DNA of 64,000 bases from Obrimoposthia wandeli (taxonomy: Eukaryota): contig CDROCS010003758.1 of the NCBI GenBank assembly GCA_977020255.1, forward strand, positions 1 through 64,000, written 5' to 3'. Below are positions 2,200 to 64,000 of the stretch, one piece after another. Below the pieces are notes generated by a model. That model saw nothing but the letters and a program-made list of their open reading frames with translations. It had not been told where the DNA came from and did not search any database. Numbering within the stretch: the first letter of the stretch is position 1; every line of letters starts with the position of its first letter. The translations under genes were made by a program, and so were the position numbers.

Positions 2200-2248
2200 A
2201 TCACGACCGGGAATTGAACCACACATTCTGCCACTGGACAACTGTGGC
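2200..2248 (-). other. Degenerate tRNA-derived (SINE-head-like) fragment
   Basis: A-box-like TTGTCCAGTGG and B-box GGTTCAATTCC, too closely spaced for a complete cloverleaf. Confidence 0.35.
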
Positions 2249-4849: not shown

Positions 4850-5340
4850 AGACGCGCAAATCCTAATCTCAGATCATCAGTATTGACTTATCCTGCTTCC
4901 TCACTTTGAATTGATATAATTGCTAAACCAATCAATCTATCTTGGCTCATCGCTGACCTTAAATACGATTTCATAAGTTTTAATTTAGAAACAATTCTTT
5001 CACCACTCGCAACAGTCACATGCATTTTGAAAAAGATTCTTAAAGCAATACAGATGTTAGGAAATAATTCCATCAAGTTAGTTTCACAAATGTATTACAA
5101 GGTTTCTAGTGGCCCAAATGTTTCTTGAACTCCGTATGTTAAAGATTTCCTTTCGTAGAATAGCTCGTTTCCATTTATGTCCCTGGATTCTCCTCTGTCA
5201 GATATTTTCCCAATTCATCACAATGCGATTTCGACCAATCTTTATCAACTTTTGAAATTGTGAAAAATAATTCAAATGGCTCCAATGTTTCCTTAACTGA
5301 AAAAAATCATTCATATATCGTTTCAATGCAAGTTGCAGCA
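4850..5340 (-). mobile_element. hAT transposase C-terminal relic in a CYP intron (copy 2 about 42570-43065)
   Basis: DINGNELFYE...PLETL*YICETNLMELFPNICIALRIF...VTVASGERIVSKLKLMKSYLRSAMSQDRL.GLAIISI. Confidence 0.88.
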
Positions 5341-8300
5341 GATTATGTTATCTTTGATTTTTCATCTTGTACTACATTTTTGTTTTATCGATTAAAAGTA
5401 TTGACTTTAAAAGTTACAATTTTTTCTTAAATAAATAAATCTTACATAAATTAATTTAAATTTCAAAATAATTCCAAATCATTAATTTTATTAACTTTAG
5501 TTTTATTTATTACAAAAGGTGTATGACGTATTTATTAATATAACCTACACATCATCAAAGAAAATAATTCTTTCAAATCCAGTATTTTTTGAAATTTTGA
5601 CTATTTAAGAGCATTCAAATAAAATTAATTTGATCTTTTATTTCAAAATTTCTCAGTTTTTGCAGTTATTTAGCAGATTTGAATGTTACAAATGATGGGT
5701 TTTATATATTTACCTTTTTAATATATTATTTTAATATTTAGAGGTGCTCATTTGAGACTATTTCCTTGGTAATCTTTCAGTAAATATTTTATAAAATTCA
5801 TTGGATATATTTAGTTTGCCTTATCATAAATAATTTACATGCTCAACTTCAGGAAATCTATGATAAAAATCTGTGACTCCATATCAATACATGCTTCATA
5901 GTGGTTTAGAATGATTTTTATCCCATTGATTTTGACGTTGTTGGTACTTACCTGAAATTGAAGTTTGTGTCTTTGTGTTCTGATATTTTAATACCGATTC
6001 TAACACTAAATTCCTCAACAACAAAAATAAACATATGAAAGAATTTGCTAATCTTCAAAATATCTCTGATGATCTGAGTTTCCAAAATAAGCAGAAGAGA
6101 ATGATTCTCTATTTAGGTATCGTTTTTGTTTCATTTGAAAAAGTAATTTGAAATTTTGAGTATTATATGAAGATGGATTAAATAAGTAATAGTAACAAGA
6201 CAACAAATTATAAGTAAAAGTCGACAAATGTAACACTCAACAAGTAGAAGAATTTGCCTAATGAAATGAACAATTTATTTAACAATTAAAATTCAATAAA
6301 AATATTATGTTAATGCTAACTGATAAAAACACTTAAAATATTAGAAAAAAAGTCACGATTACCGCTCTCTGCGGAAGATTGGAGATAGTTTTATGCGTGT
6401 TGTGCAGAAAAGACACCGAAGAATTCAGGAGTTCCCAATGGAAGTTAGGGGAAACATAATCTGACATTAACGGTTTTACATCTCGACTTTGCAAAGATTA
6501 AATACGGCTTGTTGAGATGTTTGTGATGATCATTTAATGATTTTTTTTTAAGATGAGCCTATCCAAAATTATTCGACTTCGAAAGGCAAATAATTAGTGA
6601 TTTTAATGAAGAAAATCAATAATTAACTTTTTTTATTAAACTATGTGATATATGTATTGATCCACTATTTTATTTAGCAGTAACAAATGTATTATTTAAC
6701 ATTACTTTAATGTTATTTAAAAAATTGTATATGCAGATAAAAATGAATTAATCACTTATATTAATTAACTTTATTCCAATATTGTTATTTTAAGAATATT
6801 GAATATTTTATATATAGTTAATTATATTTTATTACATTTTATTTATAAATTTAGTTTATGTATTTTTTTTTATTTGGCTTCAAGACATTTTTAATTTTTA
6901 TATATTTATTGTTAATTAGTTTGTAAGAAAGTTATTGCTCAAAAGATTTAACTTATTTCAAAACCCAAAAGTATTCTGCTAAAAACATATTGCATTCGAA
7001 GAAGGGTTGATACAACACAGTTGTATATGTGTTTTCTACAATTTTTCCTGAGATGGTAGTATAGGCAAAATTATTTCCATTTTTTGTTTGAAGACTTGCG
7101 ATAGTCCACTAAACATCTGAACGTGAATGAAAGTCCTTCAGATTGAACATGTAGGTTTGTCAAACTGACATTCGTTAAATTATAGTATGGAAGTGTTGTT
7201 TAGAAAAGTGTAGAGCAGTATACACACATTTTACCACTACATCACAACTATCATGATAATTATGATTCCCAATACCAGTAGCTAGCTAAGTTGTGCTGAC
7301 CTTGTTGCCGACAATGGAGACAATCTCTCTGTAGACCTCCTCCTGGGTGGCTGGGTTCATGGCCAAGTAGTAGGAACAGAACGTCAGTGCCGATGCAGTT
7401 GTCTCAAATCCTGCTAAAAGGAACACAATAGACTGGGCCATCATTTCCTCCTCAGTGAGACCTTTGTACTGTTCCCCAGAGCTTTTGTCCGCTTCTGTCG
7501 TGCTTTGTTTCGAATCGACGAGTTCCTTGTTGGCCTTCAGCATGATTGCTAAAAAGTCGTGGTGATCCTGCATGTTACATTGTATACTGGCCACTATACA
7601 GTCTTGTTTCATAAATGCGCAACCTTTCCCCGTATAGAACAGTAGGATTTTCCAAGGCTCTTCCTATTGGATGGATGAATATTTGTTTAGATTTATATCC
7701 TTAGCTGATATATAGCCTTCTGAGAAATTTTTTCTTCTTGAAAATTTTAATTGACTTATAAACCTCTACTGCAGGGTATGAAATGTAAGTAAACCTTAAT
7801 TTATTAAAATAGATTATGAAAAAATATACAGAAAATAGAACAATTGAAAATGAATTGAATTTAAAACTAATAAAAATTGTTTACTCAAAGCGTATAACTT
7901 GAAAAATAAAATGATTTAACTATGTATCTATGTAAAAATGACCTATTACAGCATTAGTAAAAATATTTTGTTATTTGGAATTAATCATCACATTTCAATA
8001 GTTTTGATTCTAATATTTTAAAATCTGATTAATTTGCAACAAAATATATTTATTATATTCTATACAGCGAGGGCTAATTTAATAAACATCGATAATTGTT
8101 GACCAAATAAATTACATCTGAGGTTTGTTTTCGCATATCAATGGCTTTAATCAGAGACTTTTCGAAAAATTTCATCGATTCAGCAGAGATCAAGCCATAC
8201 GGGAAAAATTTCTCCATTACTGTTCCCATAAAAGGAAACATATCTGAAATTAGAGTGATACATTTTTAAAGGGTATTAAATATACTTACTGATGAAAAAT

Positions 8301-8689
8301 AGAAAAACATTCGATATACTAAAGTTGAAGAGTTTGTTGGCGTTTGTTATGAATGGATGGGTTTTATTTTTAAACACATCGAGATCAATTCCAAACATGG
8401 TCTTGGCAATCACGTCCATTGTCAGAGACTGATAGATTCTACAATGAGCGGTTCAACATTTACATTAAGATTTATAAGAAAATATCTTATTCCATAATTG
8501 TTCATTATTTATGAGGCCGTTAAATTAAACTGCGACATCTTTAGAAAATGTTCAAAGGATTTTTTTAAAAACGAAATAAAACCATATTGTAATCTACTAC
8601 ATTTATTTTTTCTATTTTTAATATTTAAACGACTCTTTTAAAATATGAATTATTCGATAGAAGAATTAAAGTCGTGTTGTGTGGTTATC

Positions 8690-9020
8690 AATACATGGAT
8701 GTTTCAAAAGAACTGGACATGGACGCACAAATTAACAGGAAACATTATGTGGACTATTTAAAAACGGGCACAGTAAAAGCTCGCTATAAAAGTGGAAAAC
8801 CAAAACTAATTGATTAAACATTTGAGAGAAGGATAATTCTTACTATTTAGTAAAAGAAACCATTTCGAGCCAGTGTGAGATGGAGAATAAATATTTATGC
8901 ATCAGCAACATCTATTAATTAGATTCAAGACAACTTTCTTCAACTCTCCCAATGGCATCCTCTGAAATCTAATATAAACATGGTAGAAAATATGTGGAGG
9001 TGGCTGAAGGTAAATGTTCT
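8690..9020 (+). mobile_element. Short Tc1-like relic (copy 2 about 46414-46744)
   Basis: QWHPLKSNINMVENMWRWLK resembles WPxxSPDLNPIENxW. Confidence 0.55.
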
Positions 9021-10039
9021 AAGTGAGATGAACTTGGGATAGTAATTAAAATATAATGGTACAAAATTTCACAAGTTATTATTTTAGTACTAAATATTAA
9101 AACATATTATTTTAAATATGTTTGTAATTTGAATACTAAAAAATGTGTACAATCTTCGAAAAAAGATAACTTTTGTCCGAAGCAAAGATTTGACTACATG
9201 GATTGTAAAATAAACGAATAAACATTACTTAAATAAAATTATTTGATTAATGGATTGTCAGTTTATAGTATGTTTTCAACCAAACATTTATCAATATAAT
9301 CATGTTTAGTTCATTTTCAGAAAGAAGTCCAAAGGTTTGGCCATTAACTGCATTCTGAAATTTAGTTTTATTAATGTTAAAAATTAAAAAAAACTTATTT
9401 ATTAATATAACCTATATACATAATATAGATTTTTTTTTCAAAAATTAGTTTTGTTTAAAATTTTGATTAAAAATATTTTTTATCAACATTTCTCAGCTTT
9501 TACAGGTAGTACCAGATATAAATGATAAAAATGATGTATTATAAGCTTTGTTTAAAATTGAATATTTTATTATTATCCACAATTTTGAGCACAGTTCATT
9601 TTGTAGTCATTTTGTATATTTGTAAATACCTAGCATTACTTATTCGTATTGTTTAATTAAATTTTTTAATCTAAATATAGTTTCTTGAATTTGTTAAAAA
9701 GTTAGTTTAGCGGTTCGGTTACTTTTAGGTCACTCTATATTATGCACATGTTTGTTTTATCTTAGTTTTTATTTTGTAAACAATGCAAAGTCCAAATGAT
9801 ACGTTACAACAAAATCATTTCTTCTAATTATATTAAGAAAATTGTCTTTAAAATATGAAAACACACAAGGGAGCCAATATTTAATGAGTTTATTTTAATA
9901 ATAACATCTTACAACTAAAAAAGTGAACCCATTTATAAATGTACTAAACAAAAAATGATTTTGTTTTATATAATGTTCGTTTATTATTTGTAAAGTGTGC
10001 AAATTAAGGTGTAATTTGATTTAATATTTAACCATTTTG

Positions 10040-17225: not shown

Positions 17226-17675
17226 ATGAGAATAAAAAAGATCATAAGCACTACGCCACACGTACAAAAAACATGTAAAAGTTGGAGACATCCTGAAGTA
17301 ACAGTTATATTTATCACTCAAAATCTTTTTCACCAAGGAGGTCACCATAGAACTAGAAATCTTAATGTACATTACTTAGTTTTATTTAAAAATCTTAGAG
17401 ATCAAACAGTTGTTGATTTTGTGGCCAGACAGGCATTTTCCCAAAATAAGAACTTTCTAGTTGATTCATTCCACGATGCTGCTAAACAAGCACATGGGTA
17501 TATATTTATTGACTTTACACAAGCTTGCCCAGATGATTTACGTGTTTTAACAGACATATTTAATTCTAAGGGAGTAACTGTTTATAAACCAATAGAGAAC
17601 AATTATAAAAAAAATAAATTTGCAATGCCTTTTAAGAAGTTGATAGTGAAACGTAAAGCAAAGCTTAAGAAATAA
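17226..17675 (+). pseudogene. C-terminal half of Polinton packaging (A32/FtsK-like) ATPase
   Basis: VIFITQNLF...LNVHYLVLFKNLRD...GYIFIDF...PDDLR...DIF matches the Polinton ATPase C-terminal pattern; Walker A/B are absent. Confidence 0.8.
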
Positions 17676-19202: not shown

Positions 19203-19895
19203 ATGTATATGGTTTTACCTAGTAACGGATGCCCGAAGACTCAGCCGGATAATGACGCTAGTAGCTTTATTATCGATTAGGACAATCCGATAAATTTCCA
19301 AGAAGGGGAAACGGCTTTAACAGAATTTTATTTTTATTATTCACCAATTGCTATAAGAAAAAATTCATATATTTCGTTTATAAAAGAAAATAATATTGAA
19401 AAAACAAATGAAATTGTGATTGGGTTTGATAGTAAAGGAAAATTCTTTTACAATTGTATAGATAAAGAAGTGAAAGTAATATATGAAAATAACAAAGTCA
19501 TATTTAAAAATCGATTAAAATTTATTAAAGTTATTCAAATTACATATGAATCTGAAAAAGAAGCTTTTCAATTCCGTTTTGATAGTGAACAAACAGTATC
19601 TCGTAATAGACGGGATATAGTCTCATCTAAATCGGTTAGAAAGGTTCATAGTAGTATAGCAAGAGTGTTGTTACTTAAAACGAGAGTAAATGATATAGTG
19701 AAACTTAAAAAGTTTTTAAAAGAATATAAAATAGATAATGAAGTGAATTTATGTAAATTAATACAGAAGAAATTTAGTGAATATTTGGATAAATGTGTAA
19801 CACAAAAAAACGGTAAATTGACGTTTATAGTAAAGAGCAAGATAAATAAAAAAACCATGTTAAAGTTAACCTTTCATACACACTCATGCAATTAA
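19203..19895 (+). pseudogene. Putative Polinton minor capsid (penton-like) protein, one internal TAG, 3'-truncated
   Basis: Begins MYMVLPSNGCPKTQPDNDASSFIID*DNPINFQEGETALTEFYF, resembling the LPSN...N...F...ALxE N-terminus of Polinton minor capsid ORFs. TAG at 19278-19280; same frame as the ORF at 19416-19895. Confidence 0.55.
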
Positions 19896-20445
19896 ATAAT
19901 TAAAATGTCTTATCTCGTTTAATAACATTCCTTAATTGTAATATTTTAAAATAATTAGATAAATTTAAATTCTTTATTTTTAAATAACTTGATTATAAAA
20001 TTATATTGGTAAATATAATTGAAATTATCATTATTCGTTTCTCTTTTTAACTATTCGAAAATATATTTATATATATATATACAAATTTAGTAAATTAACT
20101 CAACAAACAATATTATTTTTTAATTACTTGATATTTTTGCCATTGTTTTATCAATATAATATGAATATTCAATTTATTTCTTCAAAAATTCATTTTATAT
20201 ATTAAATAATATTTCATTATCACATTATTGTGGTATTTTATCAAGTGCTTTTAATTTTAAACTATAAAAATATTTTAATTATAAAGTTAGTAGCTGTATT
20301 GGCCCACTGCATATGATATAAATTTCAAATATAAAGTACTATTAAATGTATTCTTTCAAATAGTAAAAGTTCTTTCGAGTTATTTAATTTTGTTTACTAG
20401 ACATACGAAAATTGACTTGTAAATATAATATATTTTTGCATATAT
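19895..20445 (+). repeat. About 550-bp dispersed repeat shared with 30983-31530 (interior of the mini-Polinton)
   Basis: Both begin aataattaaaatgtcttatctcgttt and run collinearly to gaaaattgacttgtaaa, with scattered substitutions and indels. Confidence 0.9.
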
Positions 20446-24464: not shown

Positions 24465-24800
24465 AATCTCATGGAAGTTAGGGTAATCCCATGATAGTTA
24501 GGGAAATCTAGTGGACGTTTAGTGGTTTAAGGAGGAAAATAACGTGGAAGTTAGAATAATCCCATGGAAGTTAGGAAAATCTAGTGGTAGTTAGGGAAAT
24601 CTCATGGAAGTTAGGGTAATCTCATGGTAGTTAGAAAAATCTCGTGGAAGTTGAGTGGTTTCAGGAGGAAAATAACGTGGAAGTTAGGATAATCTCATCG
24701 TAGTTAGGAAAATCTAATGCTAGTTAGGGAAATCTTGTGGTAGTTAGGATAATCTCATGGATGTTAGGAAAATCTCGTGGATGTTAAGAGATTTAAGAGG
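24465..24800 (+). repeat. 20-21-bp minisatellite (copy 2 about 62200-62535)
   Basis: Recurrent AATCTCATGGAAGTTAGGGT / AATCTCGTGGAAGTTAGGAA variants. Confidence 0.85.
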
Positions 24801-25605
24801 AATAAATATAATCAATGAAATCATACCAATATCAAACCTACCTCTTTCATTAAAGCAATCATAGATGGATGTTTTTAAATAACATACCTAATTTGATATT
24901 ACTTATACATCAATGTTGATTGATTGAAATATTCTACGTTGTAGTTGTTTAACTTTAAACATTTTGTTGTAAAAACTAAGATATTAAGACTTTTGAATTA
25001 GATAATCAGGTTAGGCTGTAAAGGAAAACATTGGAAATTTTTATAAGAATGAATCTAATAATCAATAAATCGAGATATATCTATCCATATCTTCTAACAT
25101 CTCTATCATGAATCTTCTATCAAAAACCTTCATCCCTAACTTTCAGAGAAATTACCAAATACCATAGATTCATATATTTCCATACATATTGATTATTGAA
25201 AAACTGAAATTATCAATATTATCAACATCTAATCTCACTATCATCAACCATCATAAAGTGGCTGATAATAGGAATAATGATTTTTCTAATGTGTCATTGG
25301 GATTTAGAGTATAAAAAGGGTTAAATACAATTTTTTATTTACAAGTAACAAATATTTGAAAGTTTTTAAATTTAAACAAAAATCGTTTTTCAAAACATAT
25401 TTTGAAAATCTGCTTAAAATAATTTTTGAATATCCGCCATACTCACATAATCATTAATCTTGAACTTTGCTTAGGCTTTCTTTTATCGATTTCTACTAAC
25501 AAAATATGTATTTTATTTTTATTCGAAATATTAACAATATTTGATTCAAGTTCATTAAAACCACCTTTAAAACAAATTTGGTGATGCATGCAAAGTTTTA
25601 TTTAA

Positions 25606-30171: not shown

Positions 30172-31601
30172 AGTAGGTAGAAGGATGGAGTCTAGACCAC
30201 TTGACCCCCCCTAAAGGATGTCACACCATAAGGATGTCTTGCCACACCATAAGGGCATATGTTGCCTCACCTCTGGCTACAAGTAAATTAAAATAGAGTT
30301 TTCGTTGAATAAATTATAGTTAGATTGAATGCAAGTATGAATGCAAGTGAATGCTAGTATGAATTTCAATACAAGTAAGTGTCTTAGCAAGTGAATGTAA
30401 TTTTAAAAAATAAAATAAGAGTGCCGAGAGTTTGATTGAATGCAAGTGTAATTTAGACTATATGTAAATTAAAATAGAGTTTTCGTTGAATAAATTATAG
30501 TTAGATTGAATGTAAATGAATACGAGTAAGAGTTTCAGCAAGTAAATATAAAACTATGAATGAGTGACAGTGAAAATAAGAGTGTCGATAGTTTGATTGA
30601 ATGAGAGTGTAATTTAGACTAGAAATAAATTAAAATAGAGTTTTAGTATGAATAAAGTTATGTTAAGTTACAGTTAGATTAATAACAAGTAAGCAACTAT
30701 AGGAAGCAGTGATATTGAAGTATGTTAAAAATTAGAACGACTAAGTTATGACAAGATTAATAGAAAACAACACCAAATTTGACAGTATGAATGAAAATTA
30801 GTAAAATATTAATGTATTTGAATGTATTTGAAAGATAGTTTGAATAAATTACAGTTAGATTGAATGCAAATGAATGCAATTATGATTGAATGCAGGGTCA
30901 AGTACAAGTAAGAAAGAATACGCAATATGCAAGTACGAATGCCAATTATGAATGAAAATTAGTAAATATATTAATGAATTTGAATAATTAAAATGTCTTA
31001 TCTCGTTTGATAAAATTCATTAATTAAAATATTTTAAAATAATTAGTTTAATTTAAATTCTTTATTTTTTTAAATAACTTGATTATACAATTATATTCGT
31101 AAATATAATTAAATTATCATTATTCGTTTCTCTTTTTAACTATTCGAAACTGTTTTTATATATACAAATTTAGTAAATTAACTCAACAACAATTTTTTTT
31201 TTAATTACTTGATATTTTTGCCATTGTCTTATTAATATAATATGAATATTCAATTTATTTCTTCAAAAATTCATTTTATATGTTAAATAATATTCTTTAT
31301 CACATTATTGTGGTTTTTATCAAGTGATTTTAACCTTAAACTATAAAAATATTTTAATTATAAAGTTAGTAGCTGTACCCCGCCCACTGCATATAACATA
31401 AATTTCAAATATAAAGTACTATTAAGTTTATTATTTCGAATAGTAAATGTTTTTCGAGTTATTTAATTTTGTTTACTAGACATTCGAAAATTGACTTGTA
31501 AACATAATTTTTTTTTTGTTTGTTGCATATTTAATACTTAAAATCAATGACATCCTTTAGGGGGGGGGTCAAGTGGTCTAGACTCCATCCTTCTACCTAC
31601 T
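30172..31601. mobile_element. 1430-bp non-autonomous Polinton-type element with about 52-bp TIRs and 6-bp TSD
   Basis: Left end AGTAGGTAGAAGGATGGAGTCTAGACCACTTGAC(C)nTAAAGGATGTCA (30172-30223) has an exact inverted copy at 31548-31601 apart from C-run length. GAACTA flanks both ends (30166-30171, 31602-31607). No ORF; internal repeats of about 180 bp. Confidence 0.85.
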
Positions 31602-33609: not shown

Positions 33610-34196
33610 ATGAGTGACAATAAAATTCTGGTAAGTGTGGATAACAGAGTTTCACTGTTCTTTGCCATTGTTTATGTTGTCCGTGTTCAAAGTCAGCTAT
33701 ATTTTGTTTACTGTTTTCCATTTATTTATATATCCTTCTTTGGTTGCACTATTGACTTATATCTCTTAATTATTGACTAAAGCCGTTTCAATTAATTATG
33801 TAGATTCCTGATTTAGACTTAACCTATTTATGTACATATTTTCTTCTGTGGGGACGTCAGCATAACAATTGAATCACATTTCAGCCACTTCCGTATCAAA
33901 TATAAGTTATGCAACGAATTCATATTTGCATCCAGATGAAGATATCTCGACAAAGATGTTGATGATTTAATTCCTGTATACGTCTTTCTTTGTATATTAG
34001 CGACAATTTACAACATAAGCACTCAATAGTTACTCAACAATTAGAAAATTGGAAAACCCTTTGCCATTCTGACGCCTCTAATAAGTTGGGAAATGATTTA
34101 GAACAGATTATATATAAAAGACTAAATTCTATGGCATTGTGTATTAAACTACAAACTGAACCATTGATAATCTTTGATCTTTTGTCCACAGAATGA
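33610..34196 (+). CDS. Putative small 4-exon gene (about 105 aa), product unrecognised
   Basis: ATG at 33610 with a GTAAGT donor at 33631. Exons 33610-33630, 33804-33831, 33885-33957 and 34001-34196 are phase-compatible and open (MSDNKILIPDLDLTYLSTSVSNISY...DLLSTE). No homology recognised. Confidence 0.35.
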
Positions 34197-34319
34197 GCAG
34201 TTGTTGGCCATCAAGACACACAGCCTACACATCGTATGACCACAGGGCATCAGAGCAAAGTTGATTGGTTCGTCCTCGCATATTTCACAGATAGATATTT
34301 CATCCACCCGGCTCCCACC
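34149..34319 (-). CDS. Terminal exon encoding a C3HC4 RING finger (IAP/Mind-bomb-like spacing)
   Basis: After acceptor attctgaag the frame reads GGSRVDEISI-CEIC-EDEPINFALMP-CGH-TM-CRLC-VLMANN-CSFC-GQKIKDYQWFSL-stop, i.e. eight Zn ligands in RING order followed by a short hydrophobic C-terminus. Confidence 0.85.
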   Translation of the reverse strand, partial: GGSRVDEISICEICEDEPINFALMPCGHTMCRLCVLMANNCSFCGQKIKDYQWFSL

Positions 34320-34963: not shown

Positions 34964-37599
34964 ATGTTTCTGTATTGTCGCTTCGATAAGTATTTGTCTA
35001 CATCGTCCACCCTCAGATGCAAATTCTAACGCTTTATTCTCATACTAAATTCTGATTTTAATAGTTTTGATAAACATCTACATACATTATCAATTGCATC
35101 GATATCGGCTCCGTTTTCCAATAAACACAAAACTGCATTAGTATTATCCTTATGTACAGCAATATGAAGTGATGTATGACCGAGCTAAGAGATCTAATAA
35201 TTAAAAACCTCAAATAAGCTTACTTTGTCAGTTGCTTCGATATTAGCTCCATTTTTCAATAAACATGTAATTGTACTAGTAAAATCGTTCTGTACAGCAA
35301 TATGAAGTGATGTTTGACCGAACTAAAGAGATCAAATAATTAAAAACCTCAAATAAGCTTACTATGTTAGTTGCTTCAATATTAGCTCCGTTTTCCAATA
35401 AACATGTAATTGTACTAGTAATATCGTTACGTACAGCAATATGAAGTGATGTTTGACCGTTCTAAGAGATCAAATAATTAAAAACCTCGAATAAGCTTAC
35501 TTTGTCAGTTGCTTCGATATTAGCTCCGTTTTCCAATAAACATGTAATTGTACTAGTAATATCGTTCTGTACAGCAACATGAAGTGATGTTTGACCGTTC
35601 TAAGAGATCTAATAATTAAAAACCTCAAATAAGCTTACTTTGTCAGTTGCTTCGATATTAGCTCCGTTTTTCAATAAACATGTAATTGTACTAGTAATAT
35701 CGTTACGTACAGCAATATGAAGTGATGTTTGACCGAACTAAAGAGATCAAATAATTAAAAACCTCGAATAAGCTTACTTTGTCAGTTGCTTCGATATTAG
35801 CTCCGTTTTTCAATAAACATGTAATTGTACTAGTAAAATCGTTCTGTACAGCAATATGAAGTGATGTTTGACCGAACTAAAGAGATCAAATAATTAAAAA
35901 CCTCAAATAAGCTTACTATGTTAGTTGCTTCAATATTAGCTCCGTTTTCCAATAAACATGTAATTGTACTAGTAATATCGTTACGTACAGCAATATGAAG
36001 TGATGTTTGACCGTTCTAAGAGATCTAATAATTAAAAACCTCAAATAAGCTTACTATGTTAGTTGCTTCAACATTAGCTCCGTTTTTCAATAAACATGTA
36101 ATTGTACTAGTAATATCGTACTGTACAGCAACATGAAGTGATGTTTGACCGTTCTAAGAGATCTAATAATTAAAAACCTCAAATAAGCTTACTTTGTCAG
36201 TTGCTTCGATATTAGCTCCGTTTTTCAATAAACATGTAATTGTACTAGTAATATCGTTACGTACAGCAATATGAAGTGATGTTTGACCGAACTAAAGAGA
36301 TCAAATAATTAAAAACCTCGAATAAGCTTACTTTGTCAGTTGCTTCGATATTAGCTCCGTTTTCCAATAAACATGAAATTGCACCAGTAATATCCCTCTG
36401 TACAGCAATATGGAGTGATGTTTGACCGAACTAAAGAGATCAAATAATTAAAAACCTCGAATAAGCTTACTTTGTCAGTTGCTTCGATATTAGCTCCGTT
36501 TTCCAATAAACATGTAATTGTACTAGTAATATCGTTCTGTACAGCAATATGAAGTGATGTTTGACCGTTCTAAGAGATCTAATAATTAAAAACCTCAAAT
36601 AAGCTTACTATGTTAGTTGCTTCAATATTAGCTCCGTTTTTCAATAAACATGTAATTGTACTAGTAATATCGTTACGTACAGCAATATGAAGTGATGTTT
36701 GACCGAACTAAAGAGATCAAATAATTAAAAACCTCGAATAAGCTTACTTTGTCAGTTGCTTCGATATTAGCTCCGTTTTCCAATAAACATGTAATTGCAT
36801 TAGTATTAGCTGTCCTTGCAGCATAATGAAGCGATGTTTGGCCGAACTAAAGAGATCAAATAATTAAAAACCTCAAATAAGCTTACGTTGTCAATTGCAT
36901 CGATATCGGCTCCGTTTTCCAATAAACACAAAACTGCATTAGTATTATCCTTATGTACAGCAATATGAAGTGATGTATGACCGAGCTAAGAGATCTAATA
37001 ATTAAAAACCTCGAATAAGCTTACTTTGTCAGTTGCTTCGATATTAGCTCCTTTTTTTATCAAATATTCTAAAAATATTACAGACTTAGCACTTTTCAAA
37101 ACATGCATGAGTGGTGTCCATCCGCTCTAAAAATAAACTAAACAATTTAAACTAATTTATTTCTCACGTCATCTTTCGACTCGATATCAATTCCGAGATC
37201 AATGAAATACTCAAATATTTCCTTAGATGTTCTTTGAGCAGCACGATGCAAATATGTCTCCCCATTCTGAATGTACTTTGAATAAATATTTCATCATCAA
37301 TAACTTACCCTATCTGTTTCAAAGACATTGAGCCCGTTTTCCACGAATATTTTAATCATTGATAAGTTTTTTCTATCCAAAATTAAACGCATTAATGTGG
37401 ATTTCTTTAGAATTTCTTTAATATATAATAATTAATATGAATTACAATATTCAGATTTTCTATCAAATCTGGCCTACAGAATCTCTGCACAGCGTCCACA
37501 TCTTCGTTTTTGATAAACTCTTGTAGTTCCCGGTAGCTAAATAACATAAAATCCGTCTAAATTTTATCTCACTCACGATTCATTTCTAGAATTGTGCAT
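34964..37599 (-). CDS. Multi-exon ankyrin-repeat protein (about 17 ANK repeats); probably continues to the RING exon at 34319-34149
   Basis: ATG at 37599. Exons 37599-37577, 37536-37446, 37404-37309, 37266-37168 (NGETYLHRAA...), 37126-37025 (SGWTPLMH...), then fourteen 99-nt phase-0 exons from 36985-36887 down to 35184-35086 (e.g. FGQTSLHIAVQNDITSTITCLLENGANIEATDK), then 35044-34964. All introns are GT-AG and 39-42 nt; no stop or frameshift in any exon. Confidence 0.93.
35086..37024 (-). repeat. Tandem array of 14 exon+intron units, 138-139 bp each
   Basis: Each unit is a 99-nt ANK exon plus an intron GTAAGCTTATT(T/C)GAGGTTTTTAATTAT...CTCTT(T)AG of 39 or 40 nt; boundaries were checked unit by unit. 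Confidence 0.97.
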
Positions 37600-39071: not shown

Positions 39072-42000
39072 TTAAACCATGATCTTTAAAAATAACAGTA
39101 TTGATAGAACCCAAATAAACTTTGAACTGAGGAGAGGCTTATCCTTGGGATTAATAAGTGAAATCTGCAAAAGTTGTTACAGCATTTCCGTTATTTGATA
39201 TGGAATCATATTCACACGATTAAAATGAGATTTTGATTTTGATAAAACAGATATTGTCTCTAAAACTATATTCCCAACCTCGTATAGTTCTTGCAGATAA
39301 AGTATTATTTTTATCTTCTTCTTTAAACAGTCGTCGAGCTTTCTCAAAATCATATGCAATGGAGTATCCAACTATCATTGTCATTTCTTTTGTTAGTAAA
39401 GCTTGGATAATTTTCGAGATAAAATTCATGCTGCTTCAATTCGTTAAAAGTTTAGGGGACAATTCAATGAATGTGACTGTATATTTTACAGAACTTATAT
39501 AATTTCAAAATCATCTCAAACCAGGAACAATGTCAGGTATCTGGTGAAATGAGGGCTGTCGTAATTTATCATAACGTCTGGATAAATATCAGAGCATTTT
39601 TATTTGAATTTTTAAAACCATTATTGTTGGGTTTCGTGATCCCAGATTTAAGACAGTCGGCACTACTCACCGGGGTCTTGGGACATGACACAAGCCGGAA
39701 TCTCCTGAGTACATAAACCAGGGCCAATTTTGCCTCCATCTGCGCAAACCGCATCCCCACACAGACTCGTGGTCCCATTCCGAATGGCATGAAGGCAAAC
39801 TGACTCTGTTTCTGCCTTTTCTCGGGGTCGAATCTGAAATATACGAGCTCAGATACGCGATAATGACCAGGGCTGAGGGTTCAGATTTGTAATGTTAGGC
39901 TCAGGAGAAAATAAGTTATCACGACCGGGAATTGAACCACACATTCTGCCACTGGACAACTGTGGCTCGTAATCTCTTCTGATAACCTAACGAAGAATTT
40001 GTGAATGGGGATTATGAAAATGATCATTTGTAAGTATTTGAATTTTATTTGATACTTATCTCAGCAGTATTATGAAAAATTGTGAGTTAAAACTATAGGC
40101 ATTTATTGTTTTTTAATATATAATAATCAAGAAAGAGGTGAGTTTTAAAGTTTTGGATAAATATTTTTCTCTTTTTTATTGAACTGTTTCTTCTTTAGGT
40201 GTCATAAAAATTAGAAGTTCACAATTTGCATAAAAAATATGAAATGAATTCTACATATAAAAGTAATTTCATTATCTGCTAGTTATCAGTATATAAAAAG
40301 TTATCGAAAGAAATATTTATGTGATAAATTTATAAATGTGTTTAAATATATTAAATTATAGAAACACTAACGTGATTATATGAATAAATACCAAATAAAA
40401 ATTAATTACCTAAAATATTAAATTGTTATTGGTTTAAAATAAACCTTACCAAATTCCTAATGGATTTTAAAATTCACAACACTATTTCAACTAGTGCGCT
40501 TAAATTTTTGGATTTAAATTATTTCAAGTAAACCAAATCATAAAATTTATTTTATAAAAATTTAATACATATAACTTTTTTATTATAAATAAATAGCAGC
40601 TAAAACTACATTTTTAATATTGCAATATATTATGTTTATCATATACTAAAATTTCACTGAGTTCTTTTATGTCCGTGCGAAACGATTCCTTGTCAGTCAA
40701 TTTGTTGTTTTATCTTCTTTTAATTTGTTATCGTAAACTTCAAGTGATTTATGATTCATTTCGGCATGCCGACGCTATTTGCACAGTTTGGAACTGATAT
40801 TTGATATTTGTAATTTTTTCGCCCAATACACCGAAACCTAAATTTGTTATAAAATAATTCTCAGAAATGTAGATACCATTTTTGTGCTTTCTTTAAACGC
40901 CGCTGACAATCCTTGTAGCCAATAATGCCTCGAAACTACCTCAATAGCAAACTTTGCACATAATTTTGCAAATTTTAACATTGATAAAAAAAGGTTTAAA
41001 TTGATACTAAATTTGTCGAATCAAAAGTGTCATAGTTTAGGAATGTTAAAATACAATTCTAAGCAACGAAAAAGCTCCGGACTTTTGAACCAACGTAATA
41101 CGTGTAGGTTTATTTATATTTTATTCTAAAATAAGTTTATTGGTTCAAGTTGGACTCTACTTCGTTTTCTGTTTGGGAGTTTACTATTGTCACCTTTAAG
41201 TAGTTAATGTAATTCTATTGATTATCGAGGCAGTACCTGTGGATGTCGAAGGTATCGGGATTGGGCCAGAGATCGGGGTCGTGGTGGATGGAGTATACCG
41301 GCACCATGACTGATTGGCCAGGAGTGAACCTCATAGCCCGGCCGGAACTTGTAGTAACCACCGCTTCTGCGGTACAGAGGCGGGCAAACCTCGATGCTGG
41401 TGGACAAATTCGCAGTGTCTCCTGGACTTTCTAGAGATTCTCCAGGTCTTCGTATGTCACCTCTTTCTGGGATGAAGATGAAATTCAGCTTTCGTTAACT
41501 CAATGAAACTAATCTACATTACTGGACAATTACTATGTAACTCGGGAATTTGCAGTGGAGGTCATCGTAGAGGGTCCTCACACTGACCTGGCGGGATATA
41601 ACATTATAAGTGATATAACTATTGAAAGGAATGACATAAATAAACGAAATTTACACAAAAACAATCGGAAATGTTAAAGCTACGGCTCAAGATCAAAACT
41701 CTTTTAACAAAACAGTTGAGTTTTCAATTATAGAACATGTATTAAATAAATTAGTCCACATCCCCTCCACTACAGAAAACAAAAAGAAATGAGCAAACAA
41801 AAATGCAAAAAGATATACAAAGGGTAACCAACAAAAACAAATTACCCGGGTTTTGGTGCGTCAACGTTGCTGCAGGACCTTAAAAATATCAAAGTTATAG
41901 GCTTTAACACAAGAAATACACAAATTAGATCAACTGGACCGGTCCTCTTCGGATACAAAAGATAACGGAATTGGCGTAGTACAGTTAGCTTAGTTTAAAC

Positions 42001-54960: not shown

Positions 54961-57630
54961 TATGAGAATAAAAAAAGATCATAAGCACTACGCCACACGT
55001 ACAAAAAACATGTAAAAGTTGGAGACATCGTGAAGTAACAGTTATATTTATCACTCAAAATCTTTTTCACCAAGGAGGTCACCATAGAACTAGAAATCTT
55101 AATGTACATTACTTAGTTTTATTTAAAAATCTTAGAGATCAAACAGTTGTTGATTTTGTGGCCAGACAGGCATTTTCCCAAAATAAGAACTTTCTAGTTG
55201 ATTCATTCCACGATGCTGCTAAACAAGCACATGGGTATATATTTATTGACTTTACACAAGCTTGCCCAGATGATTTACGTGTTTTAACAGACATATTTAA
55301 TTCTAAGGGAGTAACTGTTTATAAACCAATAGAGAACAATTATAAAAAAAATAAATTTGCAATGCCTTTTAAGAAGTTGATAGTGAAACGTAAAGCAAAG
55401 CTTAAGAAATAAAAAAAGAATCATTAAGAAAAAATAAGTGAATAAATTAATCAAATCTGTAGTTAGAAATAAAATAAAACTTGGCTTCAAATATAAACAA
55501 TATTCAAATTGAACCTTTTTTATTAAAATGAAGAAAATACAAAGAAGCATACCCTATTTTAAAGCTTTGGTCAAAGCCTCTTCTCATAAGAGAATGATTA
55601 TTCTTAAAGCATTTCCATCTTTTGTTGTAGATGATTTATTGGAAGTTTTGTATAATATAGTTTTGGGTCGAGTAAAAAATTTGGAAAACGGAAAAAATGT
55701 AGTAAAGAAATATAGAAAAACTCTTTTAGATATTGCTAATGTAAAAAGTAAAAAAAGGAAACGAAATATTATTCTTAAACATAACGGTGGTTTCATAGGG
55801 GCTGTTATTCCAGTTGTTGCTTCAATTATCAGTAGTATTATAGCTGCAACACGTACATAAACAATTATTTCAAAAATCAGCTAAATATATAAGTGCTAAC
55901 CCTTCTTTACCTAAATTTAAATTTTATATATATTCAATTTGTTGTAATGGAGAAGATATGGTTCAATCCAAAAGATCCAATTGGCTACACAGGAGTTTCA
56001 AAATTAGCAAAAAGAACAAAACAGAATTACAAGAAAACGCAAAAATGGGTGAGGGACCAGTTAGCCTACAGTCTGAACAAGCCGATAAGATAAAGGTTTG
56101 TAACTAAAATTTACAAAACCAGCGGTCCTAATAATTTATGGCAAATGGATTTGACGGAGATGATTCCATATTCTTCCATTAATAAGGGATACCGATATTT
56201 TTTAACATGTATTGATGTATTTAGCAGATTTGTTCGTGCTTGAAGCCATTAAAGAAATATTAAAATAGGATATTCCACAAAATGTGCAAACTGATTTAGG
56301 AAAAGAATTTTATAATAAGCAAGTTCAATCATTATTTAAACAAACTAATATAAATCACTACTCGATGTTTTCGCAGTACAAAGTAGCAGTAATAGAAAGA
56401 TTTAATCTTACTTTAAGAGATCAAATAAAAAAGTATTTCACAAAAGAAAGAAATAAAAAATGGGTCCAAGTTTTACACAAAATAATACATGCATATAATC
56501 ACTCTGAACATAGAAGTCTCAAGGGAATGAGACCTGTTGATGTCACTAATAAAAACTCTATGGATATTTGGATAGACAAGAATAAAAAAATATTAAAAAA
56601 GCTAAATATAAGAAAAACGAATATGTTCGAATTTCTAAAATTAGCTCTACTCCATTTATTAAAACTTTGAACAGAATTGGAGCAATGAAATATTTAGTAT
56701 AAGTAAAATTGATCAAAAGAGTAATCCAATAATGTATATTATTAAAGATGCTGACAATAATATCGTTCACGGTAAATTTTACGAGCAAGAACTACAAGTA
56801 ATATCAAATAAACCGAACGTTTTCCGTTTTCAAAAAATATTAAAATCTAAGGGTACCGGTAAATATAAACAATACTATGTTAACTGGCATGGTTATTCAG
56901 ATCCAACTTGGATATCAGCAACTAATGTAATAGGAAGTCTATGTATATGGTTTTACCTAGTAACGGATGCCCGAAGACTCAGCCGGATAATGACGCTAGT
57001 AGCTTTATTATCGATTAGGACAATCCGATAAATTTCCAAGAAGGGGAAACGGCTTTAACAGAATTTTATTTTTATTATTCACCAATTGCTATAAGAAAAA
57101 ATTCATATATTTCGTTTATAAAAGAAAATAATATTGAAAAAACAAATGAAATTGTGATTGGGTTTGATAGTAAAGGAAAATTCTTTTACAATTGTATAGA
57201 TAAAGAAGTGAAAGTAATATATGAAAATAACAAAGTCATATTTAAAAATCGATTAAAATTTATTAAAGTTATTCAAATTACATATGAATCTGAAAAAGAA
57301 GCTTTTCAATTCCGTTTTGATAGTGAACAAACAGTATCTCGTAATAGACGGGATATAGTCTCATCTAAATCGGTTAGAAAGGTTCATAGTAGTATAGCAA
57401 GAGTGTTGTTACTTAAAACGAGAGTAAATGATATAGTGAAACTTAAAAAGTTTTTAAAAGAATATAAAATAGATAATGAAGTGAATTTATGTAAATTAAT
57501 ACAGAAGAAATTTAGTGAATATTTGAATAAATGTGTAACACAAAAAAACGGTAAATTGACGTTTATAGTAAAGAGCAAGATAAAAAAAAACATGTTAAAG
57601 TTAACCTTTCATACACACTCATGCAATTAA
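54961..57630 (+). mobile_element. Polinton/Maverick internal relic, copy 2
   Basis: Duplicate of 17226-19895 at offset about 37737. Confidence 0.9.
55528..55860 (+). CDS. Intact 110-aa basic Polinton ORF with adenovirus pX-like C-terminus (frameshifted in copy 1, 17791-18122)
   Basis: Lys/Arg-rich body ending NGG-FIGAVIPVVASIISSIIAATRT; lies between the ATPase and integrase. Confidence 0.6.
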   Translation: MKKIQRSIPYFKALVKASSHKRMIILKAFPSFVVDDLLEVLYNIVLGRVKNLENGKNVVKKYRKTLLDIANVKSKKRKRNIILKHNGGFIGAVIPVVASIISSIIAATRT

Positions 57631-58384
57631 ATAATTAAAATGTCTTATCTCGTTTAATAACATTCCTTAATTGTAATATTTTAAAATAATTAGATAAATT
57701 TAAATTCTTTATTTTTAAATAACTTGATTATAAAATTATATTGGTAAATATAATTGAAATTATCATTATTCGTTTCTCTTTTTAACTATTCGAAAATATA
57801 TTTATATATATATATACAAATTTAGTAAATTAACTCAACAAACAATATTATTTTTTAATTACTTGATATTTTTGCCATTGTTTTATCAATATAATATGAA
57901 TATTCAATTTATTTCTTCAAAAATTCATTTTATATATTAAATAATATTTCATTATCACATTATTGTGGTATTTTATCAAGTGCTTTTAATTTTAAACTAT
58001 AAAAATATTTTAATTATAAAGTTAGTAGCTGTATTGGCCCACTGCATATGATATAAATTTCAAATATAAAGTACTATTAAATGTATTCTTTCAAATAGTA
58101 AAAGTTCTTTCGAGTTATTTAATTTTGTTTACTAGACATACGAAAATTGACTTGTAAATATAATATATTTTTGCATATATTCAGTTTAATATGTTGTAAG
58201 TTATTACTTTAATATAATTTAATATATTTTTTGCATATATATCAGCTCCACGTTGTCTTCGTCATAATCCAGCATCTAATCTTCATTTCATCAATCCTTC
58301 ATCGCAATCATCTATCTTGTCTTCATCTTAATCCTTCATCTTCTTCAACATCCTCATGTAAAATATTTATTTACAAAATAATTA

Positions 58385-61600: not shown

Positions 61601-64000
61601 GGACGGAGATTTACCCAGATCAATTAGATGGAATTAGATGAAAGTATCCCGAATGAATTACATGATATACTTGTAAATCTTAGAAAATAATATAGGAAGA
61701 CTTTATTATACAAGGAATACTGCTTTGATCATTTTGCTTGCAAGAAGCTATAGAAGAGAAATTAGAGATATTTAGGTATTTCTAAAAGAAACATTAATGA
61801 TATATCTAGGAAATTCATGATATTTAAGTGATTCTATAATATAAATGTATTTTAACTTTATGAAATCTATGGTATTTAAGTGATTCTAGAAGAGAAATGT
61901 ATGATATCCTAGGGAAATCATCGATATTTAGGACATTCTAGAGGGGGAATGTATGATATCTTCGGGAAATCAATTATATTTAAGTACTTCTAAAGGGGAA
62001 ATTAATGATATGTTCATCTGAATTTGTTATATTTAGAAGGTTCTAGGGCGATCCCATTGGCCTTTTAACTCATCATCCAAAGAAGCACCCTCGGATTGCT
62101 GCAGATGTAGGCTAGATTTCATACATAGAAGATACCCCCACATAAAGGGGGAACTAAGGATTTTAATTATTATAAGTCATTTAAGATGATTAGAGGTTAA
62201 TCTCATGGAAGTTAGGGTAATCCCATGATAGTTAGGGAAATCTAGTGGACGTTTAGTGGTTTAAGGAGGAAAATAACGTGGAAGTTAGAATAATCCCATG
62301 GAAGTTAGGAAAATCTAGTGGTAGTTAGGGAAATCTCATGGAAGTTAGGGTAATCTCATGGTAGTTAGAAAAATCTCGTGGAAGTTGAGTGGTTTCAGGA
62401 GGAAAATAACGTGGAAGTTAGGATAATCTCATCGTAGTTAGGAAAATCTAATGCTAGTTAGGGAAATCTTGTGGTAGTTAGGATAATCTCATGGATGTTA
62501 GGAAAATCTCGTGGATGTTAAGAGATTTAAGAGGAATAAATATAATCAATGAAATCATACCAATATCAAACCTACCTCTTTCATTAAAGCAATCATAGAT
62601 GGATGTTTTTTAAATAACATACCTAATTTGATATTACTTATACATCAATGTTGATTGATTGAAATATTCTACGTTGTAGTTGTTTAACTTTAAACATTTT
62701 GTTGTAAAAACTAAGATATTAAGACTTTTGAATTAGATAATCAGGTTAGGCTGTAAAGGAAAACATTGGAAATTTTTATAAGAATGAATCTAATAATCAA
62801 TAAATCGAGATATATCTATCCATATCTTCTAACATCTCTATCATGAATCTTCTATCAAAAACCTTCATCCCTAACTTTCAGAGAAATTACCAAATACCAT
62901 AGATTCATATATTTCCATACATATTGATTATTGAAAAACTGAAATTATCAATATTATCAACATCTAATCTCACTATCATCAACCATCATAAAGTGGCTGA
63001 TAATAGGAATAATGATTTTTCTAATGTGTCATTGGGATTTAGAGTATAAAAAGGGTTAAATACAATTTTTTATTTACAAGTAACAAATATTTGAAAGTTT
63101 TTAAATTTAAACAAAAATCGTTTTTCAAAACATATTTTGAAAATCTGCTTAAAATAATTTTTGAATATCCGCCATACTCACATAATCATTAATCTTGAAC
63201 TTTGCTTAGGCTTTCTTTTATCGATTTCTACTAACAAAATATGTATTTTATTTTTATTCGAAATATTAACAATATTTGATTCAAGTTCATTAAAACCACC
63301 TTTAAAACAAATTTGGTGATGCATGCAAAGTTTTATTTAACCCATTATAACCCAGGTTCACAATTTTTTGATTTTTTAAATGATTTTTCCAACAATATAG
63401 TTTAAAAGGCGTAGAAACATTTTATACTAGTCAGAATTAATTTACCTAAAAAAATAACCGAGAGATGGGGTGATTTCATATGAGATCACTGGGATATAAG
63501 GTACTAAATGTATAGTTAATTCAAACAAAAACACCAATTTTTAAAAAATATATTGTCGAGCTATTACATTCTGTGGTACGGTAAAAAACAATCGACACAT
63601 AAGGCGATATTGCATTTTAAGCAATATGTTCTTGGTTGTGAAGAATTTTGACATCTTCTTTGATGATCCCGTTTTCTTATAATGTGACCTTTGGAGTCGA
63701 ATCGAATACTTGGTTCATTTTCTGATGGTCTGGGTACTGATTTTTTTCGACCTACTGACATCTAGGACTTGCCAATTTTAAATATGACATGGTAATAGCT
63801 CTTCTAAAAGACAACAAATCCATAGATTCTTTTGGATCATCATGTAAAAATTTGTAAATTATCCATGAATTTACCACTGCCATATCAATAATACGAGTAA
63901 AAAGAGGCCAATACCATTTTTACCTCGAATTGATGTTGAGAATTTATTTGCTAACCAATCATGTTTGTCAACTTTCCCATGTAAGCATTATAGTTTTTCA

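Follow-up and report, generated by a model that had tools for sequence, protein, structure and literature searches.

A young array of ankyrin exon-intron cassettes reshuffled by recombination in a probable ankyrin-RING gene of Obrimoposthia wandeli

The first 64,000 nt of contig CDROCS010003758.1 of Obrimoposthia wandeli (assembly GCA_977020255.1; hereafter the window, AT-rich eukaryotic DNA with a G+C content of about 29%) contain on the minus strand, at 35086–36985, an array of 14 near-identical ankyrin exons, every one exactly 99 nt long and free of stop codons. The units of this array have exchanged short segments with each other, a block of units has been duplicated, a gene-conversion tract can be mapped, and most of the amino-acid variation of the young units falls at positions of the ankyrin groove. 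The reading we favour, and hold to be fairly probable, is that of an ankyrin cassette array inside an ankyrin-RING (ANK-RING) gene, in which concerted evolution reshuffles a few amino-acid modules and the differences that persist between units lie mostly at the groove.

Under this reading, a germline tandem array of cassettes, each one a 99-nt phase-0 exon with a 39/40-nt intron, would lie inside a single gene. The encoded protein would be an E3 ubiquitin ligase of ANK-RING type that presumably binds its substrate by the ankyrin groove. The array would be young; unequal crossing-over would duplicate single units and blocks, and short-tract gene conversion would carry segments of 30–100 nt between units. 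A small set of old two-state modules (F/N at position 3, Q/R at 13, E/K at 25 and DK/NI at 1–2) would be brought into new combinations in this way, together with linked intron and synonymous markers. Positions are given throughout in the ankyrin consensus numbering of designed ankyrin repeat proteins (DARPins), not from a three-dimensional model. Since the intron separates position 2 from position 3 at the beta-turn tip, an exchange in or near it would re-pair the two halves of a "finger tip". The framework would be held constant, the retained amino-acid differences would be mostly those of the groove, and groove diversity may be favoured by selection rather than tolerated.

Organization of the array and its gene

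The array exons are numbered 0 to 13 along transcription and alternate with 14 introns of 39 or 40 nt, which begin with GTAAGCTTATT (of the form GTAAGC..AG) and end in AG; one exon plus one intron is called a cassette. Tandem Repeats Finder reported a period of 139 nt with 14.3 copies and 90% matches over 35083–37056. All 14 introns are canonical (GT..AG), the exons are in phase 0, and the repeat coding sequence (1.4 kb) is read without frameshift or stop. The first-pass annotation, made from the sequence alone, had spoken of 14 exons and given the coordinates 35224–36846; the count holds for the full array, while that span contains 12 of them (units 1–12). The exons of the gene, in the order of transcription, are as follows.

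37446–37547, minus strand: putative first coding exon (MLFSYRELQEF...ENLNI, 34 aa), N-terminal cap-like helix region, ATG at 37547
37309–37404, minus strand: exon 2, degenerate ankyrin-like repeat KSTLMRLILDRKNLSMIKIFVENGLNVFETDR, weak tblastn similarity to an array unit, no Pfam match
37168–37266, minus strand: exon 3, 99-nt ankyrin repeat NGETYLHRAAQRTSKEIFEYFIDLGIDIESKDD, Pfam Ank_4 and Ank_3 matches, GT..AG introns of 42 and 41 nt on either side
37025–37126, minus strand: exon 4 ("unit −1"), 34-aa ankyrin repeat, Pfam Ank 24.9 bits
36887–36985, minus strand: array unit 0, L-type exon LGHTSLHIAVHKDNTNAVLCLLENGADIDAIDN, near-identical to unit 13
35224–36846, minus strand: array units 1–12, twelve 99-nt Ank exons; units 1 and 4 diverged, units 2, 3 and 5–12 the young core
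35086–35184, minus strand: array unit 13, second L-type exon and end of the array, near-identical to unit 0
34964–35044, minus strand: tail exon after the array YENKALEFASEGGRCRQILIEATIQKH, 27 codons and then a GTGAGT donor, no Pfam match
34149–34319, minus strand: terminal RING-finger exon (zf-C3HC4_3), eight Cys/His ligands complete, ending with a stop codon

On the Pfam Ank profile (PF00023, cut-off 21.1 bits), units −1, 0, 6 and 9 score 24.9–31.6 bits and match from profile position 1/2 to 32/33. Single exons thus cover the profile, and the exon boundaries are the repeat boundaries. In consensus numbering the array exons run from position 3 to position 2 of the next repeat, which places the intron within the beta-turn tip. 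Upstream of the array, exon 4 has exactly the same last 27 nt (GANIEATDK) as the array units, and exon 3 scores 20.1 bits on the Ank profile, under the cut-off, and passes Ank_4 and Ank_3. The first coding exon has a GT donor and is followed by a 41-nt intron (37405–37445) ending in AG; a 23-nt exon further upstream is a possible alternative start for the gene.

The RING exon scores 40.4 bits against PF13920 (cut-off 27) and has the ligand pattern CEIC...CGH..C..C......C..C; its neighbours in a protein-atlas search are all zf-C3HC4_3 (PF13920). Since an in-frame ATG is missing from this exon, and since it shares the strand of the array and is compatible in phase with the tail exon, the array gene probably ends in the RING. 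The most economical gene model predicts a product of about 680 aa with 17–18 ankyrin repeats and a C-terminal RING, which would probably make the gene one of E3-ligase type. Both the splicing of the cassettes and the link between array and RING are predictions from the genomic sequence. NACHT, NB-ARC, TIR and death domains were not found, the exons up to the start codon at 37547 being ankyrin or cap-like and no large open reading frame (ORF) lying nearby, and no further ankyrin exons were found in the 64,000-nt window outside the gene. The 39/40-nt intron sequence is confined to the array, which rules out for the window that these introns are a dispersed "introner".

Recombination between units and history of the array

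The recombination tests took as haplotype the 139-nt unit, composed of the upstream intron and the exon. In the four-gamete test, 43 of the 78 pairs of informative sites are incompatible; the Hudson-Kaplan minimum number of recombination events (Rm) gives at least 4 exchanges per 139-nt unit; and incompatibility grows with the distance between sites (permutation test similar to the pairwise homoplasy index, p ~0.001). This clear signal, together with the block duplication and the conversion tract described below, gives good support to the inter-unit recombination or conversion that the first-pass annotation had proposed.

Three linked modules were recognized: intron sites 28 and 37 with codon 1 (F/N), the two altered bases of codon 11 (Q/R), and one synonymous site with D/N and K/I. 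The finger tip is seen in each of its four combinations (DK|F, DK|N, NI|N and NI|F), and the recombinant junctions are of three distinct types with breakpoints at the exon end or within the intron. Each of the reshuffled combinations listed in the first-pass annotation (N-QN-DK, N-RN-NI, F-RN-DK, F-RN-NI and F-QN-DK) was found, and the two-nucleotide codon swaps that it described (TTC/AAC and CAG/CGT) are real, with the bases always changing in pairs. Recurrent mutation is ruled out as the cause of the mosaic, since the shuffled modules include these two-nucleotide swaps and a three-site block. Along with the amino-acid modules, the reshuffling has moved intron single-nucleotide polymorphisms (SNPs), an intron indel and a synonymous site; because the mosaic carries such markers, it reflects ordinary DNA-level exchange (concerted evolution). 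Exchange of this kind drags linked markers along in any concertedly evolving tandem array (PMC5100051; PMC1553488).

Comparison of units at an offset of four showed few differences (0, 6, 2 and 1 for the pairs 5/9, 6/10, 7/11 and 8/12), which identifies units 5–8 and 9–12 as a block duplication. The corresponding segments are the following.

35778–36331, minus strand: block A, units 5–8 with their upstream introns, source or twin of block B
35224–35777, minus strand: block B, units 9–12, about 98.4% identical to block A
35472–35566, minus strand: minimal gene-conversion tract, about 95 nt long, in unit 10 and the intron after it, compared with the twin unit 6 and its downstream intron

The two blocks differ at 9 sites in 554 nt, and 8 of these fall in the tract (sites 33–97 of the exon of unit 10 and sites 11 and 28 of the following intron). 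The converted sequence is that of unit 3 plus intron 4. The conversion altered five residues, and one point mutation lies elsewhere in the block. The units at the two ends of the array, 0 and 13, differ at 3 of 139 sites, two of them in the exon.

Location of the variable residues

Within the core, defined as the ten young units 2, 3 and 5–12, mean amino-acid identity is 88.4% and mean nucleotide identity of the units is 95%; for units 1–12 amino-acid identity is 84.2%. Nine of the 33 codons are variable in the core.

Position 1: D/N
Position 2: K/I
Position 3: F/N
Position 10: I/V
Position 13: Q/R
Position 14: N/Y
Position 16: I/F
Position 25: E/K, a frequent charge swap on helix 2
Position 30: I/V

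The eight groove positions (1, 2, 3, 5, 10, 13, 14 and 33) hold 70% of the amino-acid entropy of the core, against 24% expected (8/33), and groove codons differ from the others with p=0.0017. All of this groove entropy comes from positions 1, 2, 3, 10, 13 and 14, with no contribution from positions 5 and 33. Helix-2 positions 17–26 hold 13% of the entropy, and variable codons are 3 of 25 outside the groove. The framework residues G4, T6, H9, L23, G27, A28 and A32 are invariant. The helix-2 scaffold TSTITCLL.NGAN.EAT, described in the first-pass annotation as almost fixed, shows no change outside units 1 and 4, and the variants it had listed for the beta-turn and the exit of helix 1 (ends DK or NI, starts F or N, I/V/Y, QN, RN, QY, QR, RT and I/F/N) are all present. 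That the variable residues of the young core sit mostly at the usual binding-face positions of ankyrins appears largely right from the alignment of the units; in units 0, 1, 4 and 13 helix-2 positions 18–21 vary as well, and here the binding-face pattern is weakened.

Designed ankyrin libraries randomise consensus positions 2, 3, 5, 13, 14 and 33. The overlap of the array with these sites, also put forward in the first-pass annotation, is partial: positions 2, 3, 13 and 14 are variable (4 of 6), 5 (Q) and 33 (T) are fixed in units 1–12, and further variation occurs at 1, 10, 16, 25 and 30. Enrichment at the six library positions exceeds chance modestly, with a hypergeometric p=0.034 for the ten core units; inclusion of the diverged units 1 and 4 raises this to p=0.19. 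The likeness to a DARPin library thus stands for the location of the variation and was overstated in its extent, with 2–4 residue types only at each variable position. Among the combinations of the four main modules, 6 of 16 are seen.

Selection on the groove and alternative explanations

The ratio of nonsynonymous to synonymous rates (dN/dS, Nei-Gojobori) is 1.33 for the core and 1.19 for units 1–12, with only 2–3 synonymous changes. At the six a-priori DARPin codons, replacement changes reach a density of 0.39 per site; silent sites, with synonymous and intron sites taken together, have 0.074, so that the excess is 5.3-fold (Fisher p=0.002 when sites are counted). At the 25 non-groove codons the replacement density is 0.051. 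Counting of events for the eight-position groove set gives p=0.01–0.03, and with synonymous sites alone as the reference the groove excess has p ~0.06–0.08. The synonymous and nonsynonymous counts thus point both ways, the overall ratio being compatible with neutrality and the groove codons being rich in replacements.

Introns and exons have fared differently. Over all 14 units, 3 of 40 intron sites are variable, compared with 37 of 99 exon sites (p=3e-4) and 13 of 33 third codon positions, and private changes in the diverged units 0, 1 and 4 number 33 in the exons and none in the introns (p=1e-5). Neutral decay of duplicated units cannot make introns cleaner than their flanking exons. Clean introns beside persisting exon differences indicate that DNA homogenisation is active while the exon differences remain; either the homogenisation is ongoing and the exon differences are protected, or the exon interiors are fed by diverged paralogues.

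Raw-read contigs have loose ends at 36378–36393 and at 35267, where they continue past array exon 4 or unit 12 into unrelated sequence; one contig, found in three DNA runs, tracks array exon 4 to 36393 and then leaves it. These ends would indicate related ankyrin exons elsewhere in the genome, a possible source of paralogous segments.

A possible account, clearly less probable than the one we favour, makes the array a neutral by-product: recent unequal crossing-over would have produced a mosaic of two or three ancestral unit types that differ only where ankyrins tolerate change, with neither selection for diversity nor a special role in recognition. The dN/dS values, not distinguishable from 1, agree with it, as does the shuffling of intron SNPs, indel and synonymous site with the amino-acid modules; with 13 exon hits over 33 codons, some double-hit codons are expected by chance. 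Positions of raised entropy in natural ankyrin repeats are 2, 3, 5, 10, 13 and 12, 14, 16, 22, 25, 26, 30 (PMC4308713), and 8 of the 9 variable positions of the array fall inside this twelve-position set (p=3e-4). A profile of 15 units was also searched against 1.84 billion representative proteins, which gave 144,417 matches, the best 150 of which were inspected. In 86 non-self-similar ankyrin proteins from this search, the positions that lead the entropy ranking are the same as those of the array. The array therefore varies where ankyrin repeats generally vary, and a fixed framework with a drifting surface would look similar. Neutrality is less able to explain a replacement density in the groove about five times the silent one, which goes beyond relaxed constraint alone, introns 5-fold less variable than exons and below third codon positions too, and a framework with so few variable codons. 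The constraint on the framework shows that the protein is under selection; selection for diversity of the groove is suggested by the replacement excess rather than demonstrated.

The first-pass annotation had gone further, to a diversifying and possibly immune recognition protein. As an explanation, this takes the gene for a dedicated immune-like receptor in which cassette shuffling is the selected source of new binding surfaces, as in the repeats of fungal NOD-like receptors (NLRs) or in the variable lymphocyte receptors of lampreys, and we consider it unlikely. Fungal NLRs show a matching pattern in their ANK, TPR and WD repeats (PMC4986451, PMC12222747), and the groove excess of about 5-fold, exons more variable than introns, and an intron at the beta-turn tip that lets exchange recombine finger tips would all suit such a receptor; the loose contig ends hint at paralogues. 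The domains are ANK and RING only, with no NACHT, NB-ARC, TIR, death or other immune domain; the repertoire is small (few residue types per position and few module combinations); and no expansion of the family is seen within the window. The near-neutral dN/dS, the generic nature of the DNA exchange and the common variability of these positions also count against the diversifying step, and an immune role is speculation.

It is very unlikely that the array is decaying or non-functional, as a satellite-like exon-intron expansion in a pseudogene or a misassembly of a shorter array: a dN/dS near 1, the proximity of a 26-kb, 99.5%-identical duplication that is possibly an assembly or haplotype artefact, and the known tendency of self-similar repeats to misassemble (PMC12222747) would allow it, but 14 open 99-nt phase-0 exons with 14 canonical GT..AG introns, invariant framework residues, intact RING ligands and raw-read contigs that cross the unique junctions without conflict speak against it.

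Returning to the favoured reading, of an ANK-RING gene whose recombining cassettes retain differences mostly at the groove, several observations weigh against it. The RING exon lies 644 nt beyond the tail exon, a distance unlike that of the other introns (39–42 nt); the RING link could be wrong, or small exons could have been missed in this gap. No RING-bearing ankyrin protein was found among the best 150 of the 144,417 matches. The public runs covering the locus are four DNA runs from one sample, which show no splice joints and cover introns and intergenic sequence evenly. The order and number of the units rest on the assembly, as the read contigs span less than two units; at the unique junctions of the array these contigs agree with the assembly. 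Concerning selection, an overall dN/dS of 1.2–1.3 is compatible with neutrality; the groove excess for the DARPin set weakens to p=0.05–0.14 when one event is counted per codon or silent site; and the silent reference is small (4–5 changes) and includes the mini-introns, which may themselves be constrained or homogenised. Finally, the frequent E/K exchange at position 25 sits on helix 2, off the groove.

Genomic surroundings

The window contains a direct repeat of 26.3 kb (4–26265 and 37679–64000; 99.53% identity, period 37,675 bp) that reaches both window edges. Either a very recent segmental duplication in tandem or the tandem assembly of two haplotypes could account for it. The second copy starts shortly after the ANK-RING gene, which may therefore have a twin to the left of the window. 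A terminal exon of a cytochrome P450 gene is found within the large duplication at 39569–39790 on the minus strand (heme-binding motif FGxGxRxCxG, Pfam p450 E=2.4e-15), and its copy is expected near 1894–2115 in the other half. Both copies of the duplication also contain a nested tandem repeat (24465–24802 and 62199–62536) with the 20-nt motif AGGAAAATCTCATGGAAGTT in higher-order units of 133 nt.

A repeat of 555 bp with 90.8% identity occurs at 19886–20437, 30974–31516 and 57621–58172; an ORF of 159 aa (19416–19895) lies beside one copy and has a twin at 57154–57630. Another ORF at 17226–17675 on the plus strand (149 aa) had no Pfam or PHROGs match; it may resemble the C-terminal half of a Polinton/Maverick packaging ATPase. 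It is unlikely that the ANK-RING gene is cargo of a nearby Polinton-like element, since no Polinton gene was confirmed in the window and the gene has typical short spliceosomal introns. The only repeat that possibly marks the end of an element (19886–20437) is about 14 kb from the gene.

Comparison with known systems

Self-similar ANK, TPR and WD arrays with hypervariable binding positions are already established as a means of fast receptor diversification in fungal NLRs. What this locus adds is the construction from exon-intron cassettes, as the three comparator arrays examined lie in one or two exons or are intronless, and the markedly greater conservation of the introns than of the exons, by which homogenisation and retained amino-acid differences can be seen against each other in one gene. 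If the RING link holds, this array would stand alone among the 150 closest found in the profile search in leading to a RING ligase and not to a nucleotide-oligomerisation domain (NOD). If transcripts and population data agree with the favoured reading, the gene would offer a compact natural system in which repeat shuffling retunes the specificity of an E3 ligase; otherwise it is an ordinary young tandem exon duplication.

The closest known kind for the array is the class of high-internal-conservation (HIC) repeats of fungal NLRs (STAND proteins), for example Podospora HNWD/het-e and the ANK locus Pa_3_8560. HIC repeats are by definition more than 85% identical to each other across 100 aa or more (Dyrka et al. 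2014), and the ten core units, at a mean of 88.4% and with eight of them contiguous (5–12, 264 aa), fall within this definition; units 1–12, at 84.2%, are borderline. In fungal NLRs these ANK, TPR and WD repeats show concerted evolution, variation in number and positively selected positions on the concave face (PMC4986451, PMC12222747). The array is alike in the near identity of its repeats, in unequal crossing-over and shuffling, and in having few variable positions, which in the fungal ANK repeats lie at the beta-hairpin and inner helix of the concave face. It differs in having no NOD (NACHT or NB-ARC), with a probable RING instead, and in that each repeat is its own exon with a homogenised mini-intron, in an AT-rich and probably animal host with introns of 39–42 nt. 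Positive selection and repeat-number polymorphism are reported for the fungal repeats, whereas the present array is known from one sample and selection is only suggested. We think it doubtful that the array is a full animal counterpart of the fungal HIC receptors, with a groove kept diverse by cassette recombination, introns serving as recombination linkers and a ubiquitin-ligase effector, that is, a TRIM5-like logic with an ankyrin sensor.

Highly self-similar repeats are reported to be rare in animals, at 0.8% of repeats (PMC4986451). The best 150 of the 144,417 matches of the profile search were all generic long ankyrin proteins, and neither the protein of this gene nor a close relative was among them. 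Self-similar arrays (mean repeat identity of at least 70%) were nevertheless common among the closest matches, being present in 22 of 140 proteins; Aedes aegypti and Zophobas morio contribute NACHT-ankyrin proteins, and further examples come from a ctenophore, an alga and a fungus. In these 22 arrays variation is concentrated at positions 3, 5, 13, 10, 1, 14 and 2, the set of the present array except for position 5. The animal arrays (Aedes aegypti XP_021695049.1, the Zophobas morio NACHT protein and Bolinopsis microptera XP_063684480.1) resemble it in their 33-aa repeats, with 70–87% mean pairwise identity, and in these same variable positions. Gene structure was compared for three arrays and is unlike the cassettes described here: the Aedes repeats sit in an unbroken coding exon, Bolinopsis has a gene of only two exons, and a bacterial example is intronless. 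The Aedes aegypti gene (CM008043.1, at 501–9870 of the stretch examined) encodes a NACHT-ankyrin protein with 22 contiguous 33-aa repeats of 77% mean identity in a single coding exon, and this protein is an animal counterpart of the fungal HIC NLRs.

Compared with DARPin libraries, the array has in common a fixed framework, diversity at the beta-turn and helix 1, and variable positions 2, 3, 13 and 14; with the ANK-N5C libraries (PMC4308713) it shares positions 2, 3, 10 and 13. Designed libraries are almost fully randomised between molecules, whereas the array has 2–4 residue types between the repeats of one gene; relative to DARPins, positions 5 and 33 are invariant and 1, 16, 25 and 30 vary in addition. 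PRDM9 and KRAB zinc-finger arrays and TAL-effector repeats are also composed of near-identical coding repeats in which a few ligand-contact residues are reshuffled by unequal recombination or conversion; unlike the ankyrin cassettes, they have other folds, bind DNA and lie in a single exon.

As for the probable ligase, plant XB3/XBAT and animal Mind bomb proteins have a similar arrangement, with N-terminal ankyrins followed by a C-terminal C3HC4-type RING (PF13920). They contain few and diverged repeats, and the array gene lacks the MIB/HERC2 and ZZ domains; on the RING_XB3-XBAT31 profile (PF24921) the RING exon scores 23 bits, below the cut-off of 50. Canonical ankyrin genes likewise have single repeats on 99-nt exons, and it is the near-identical mini-introns that are the unusual part of this array.

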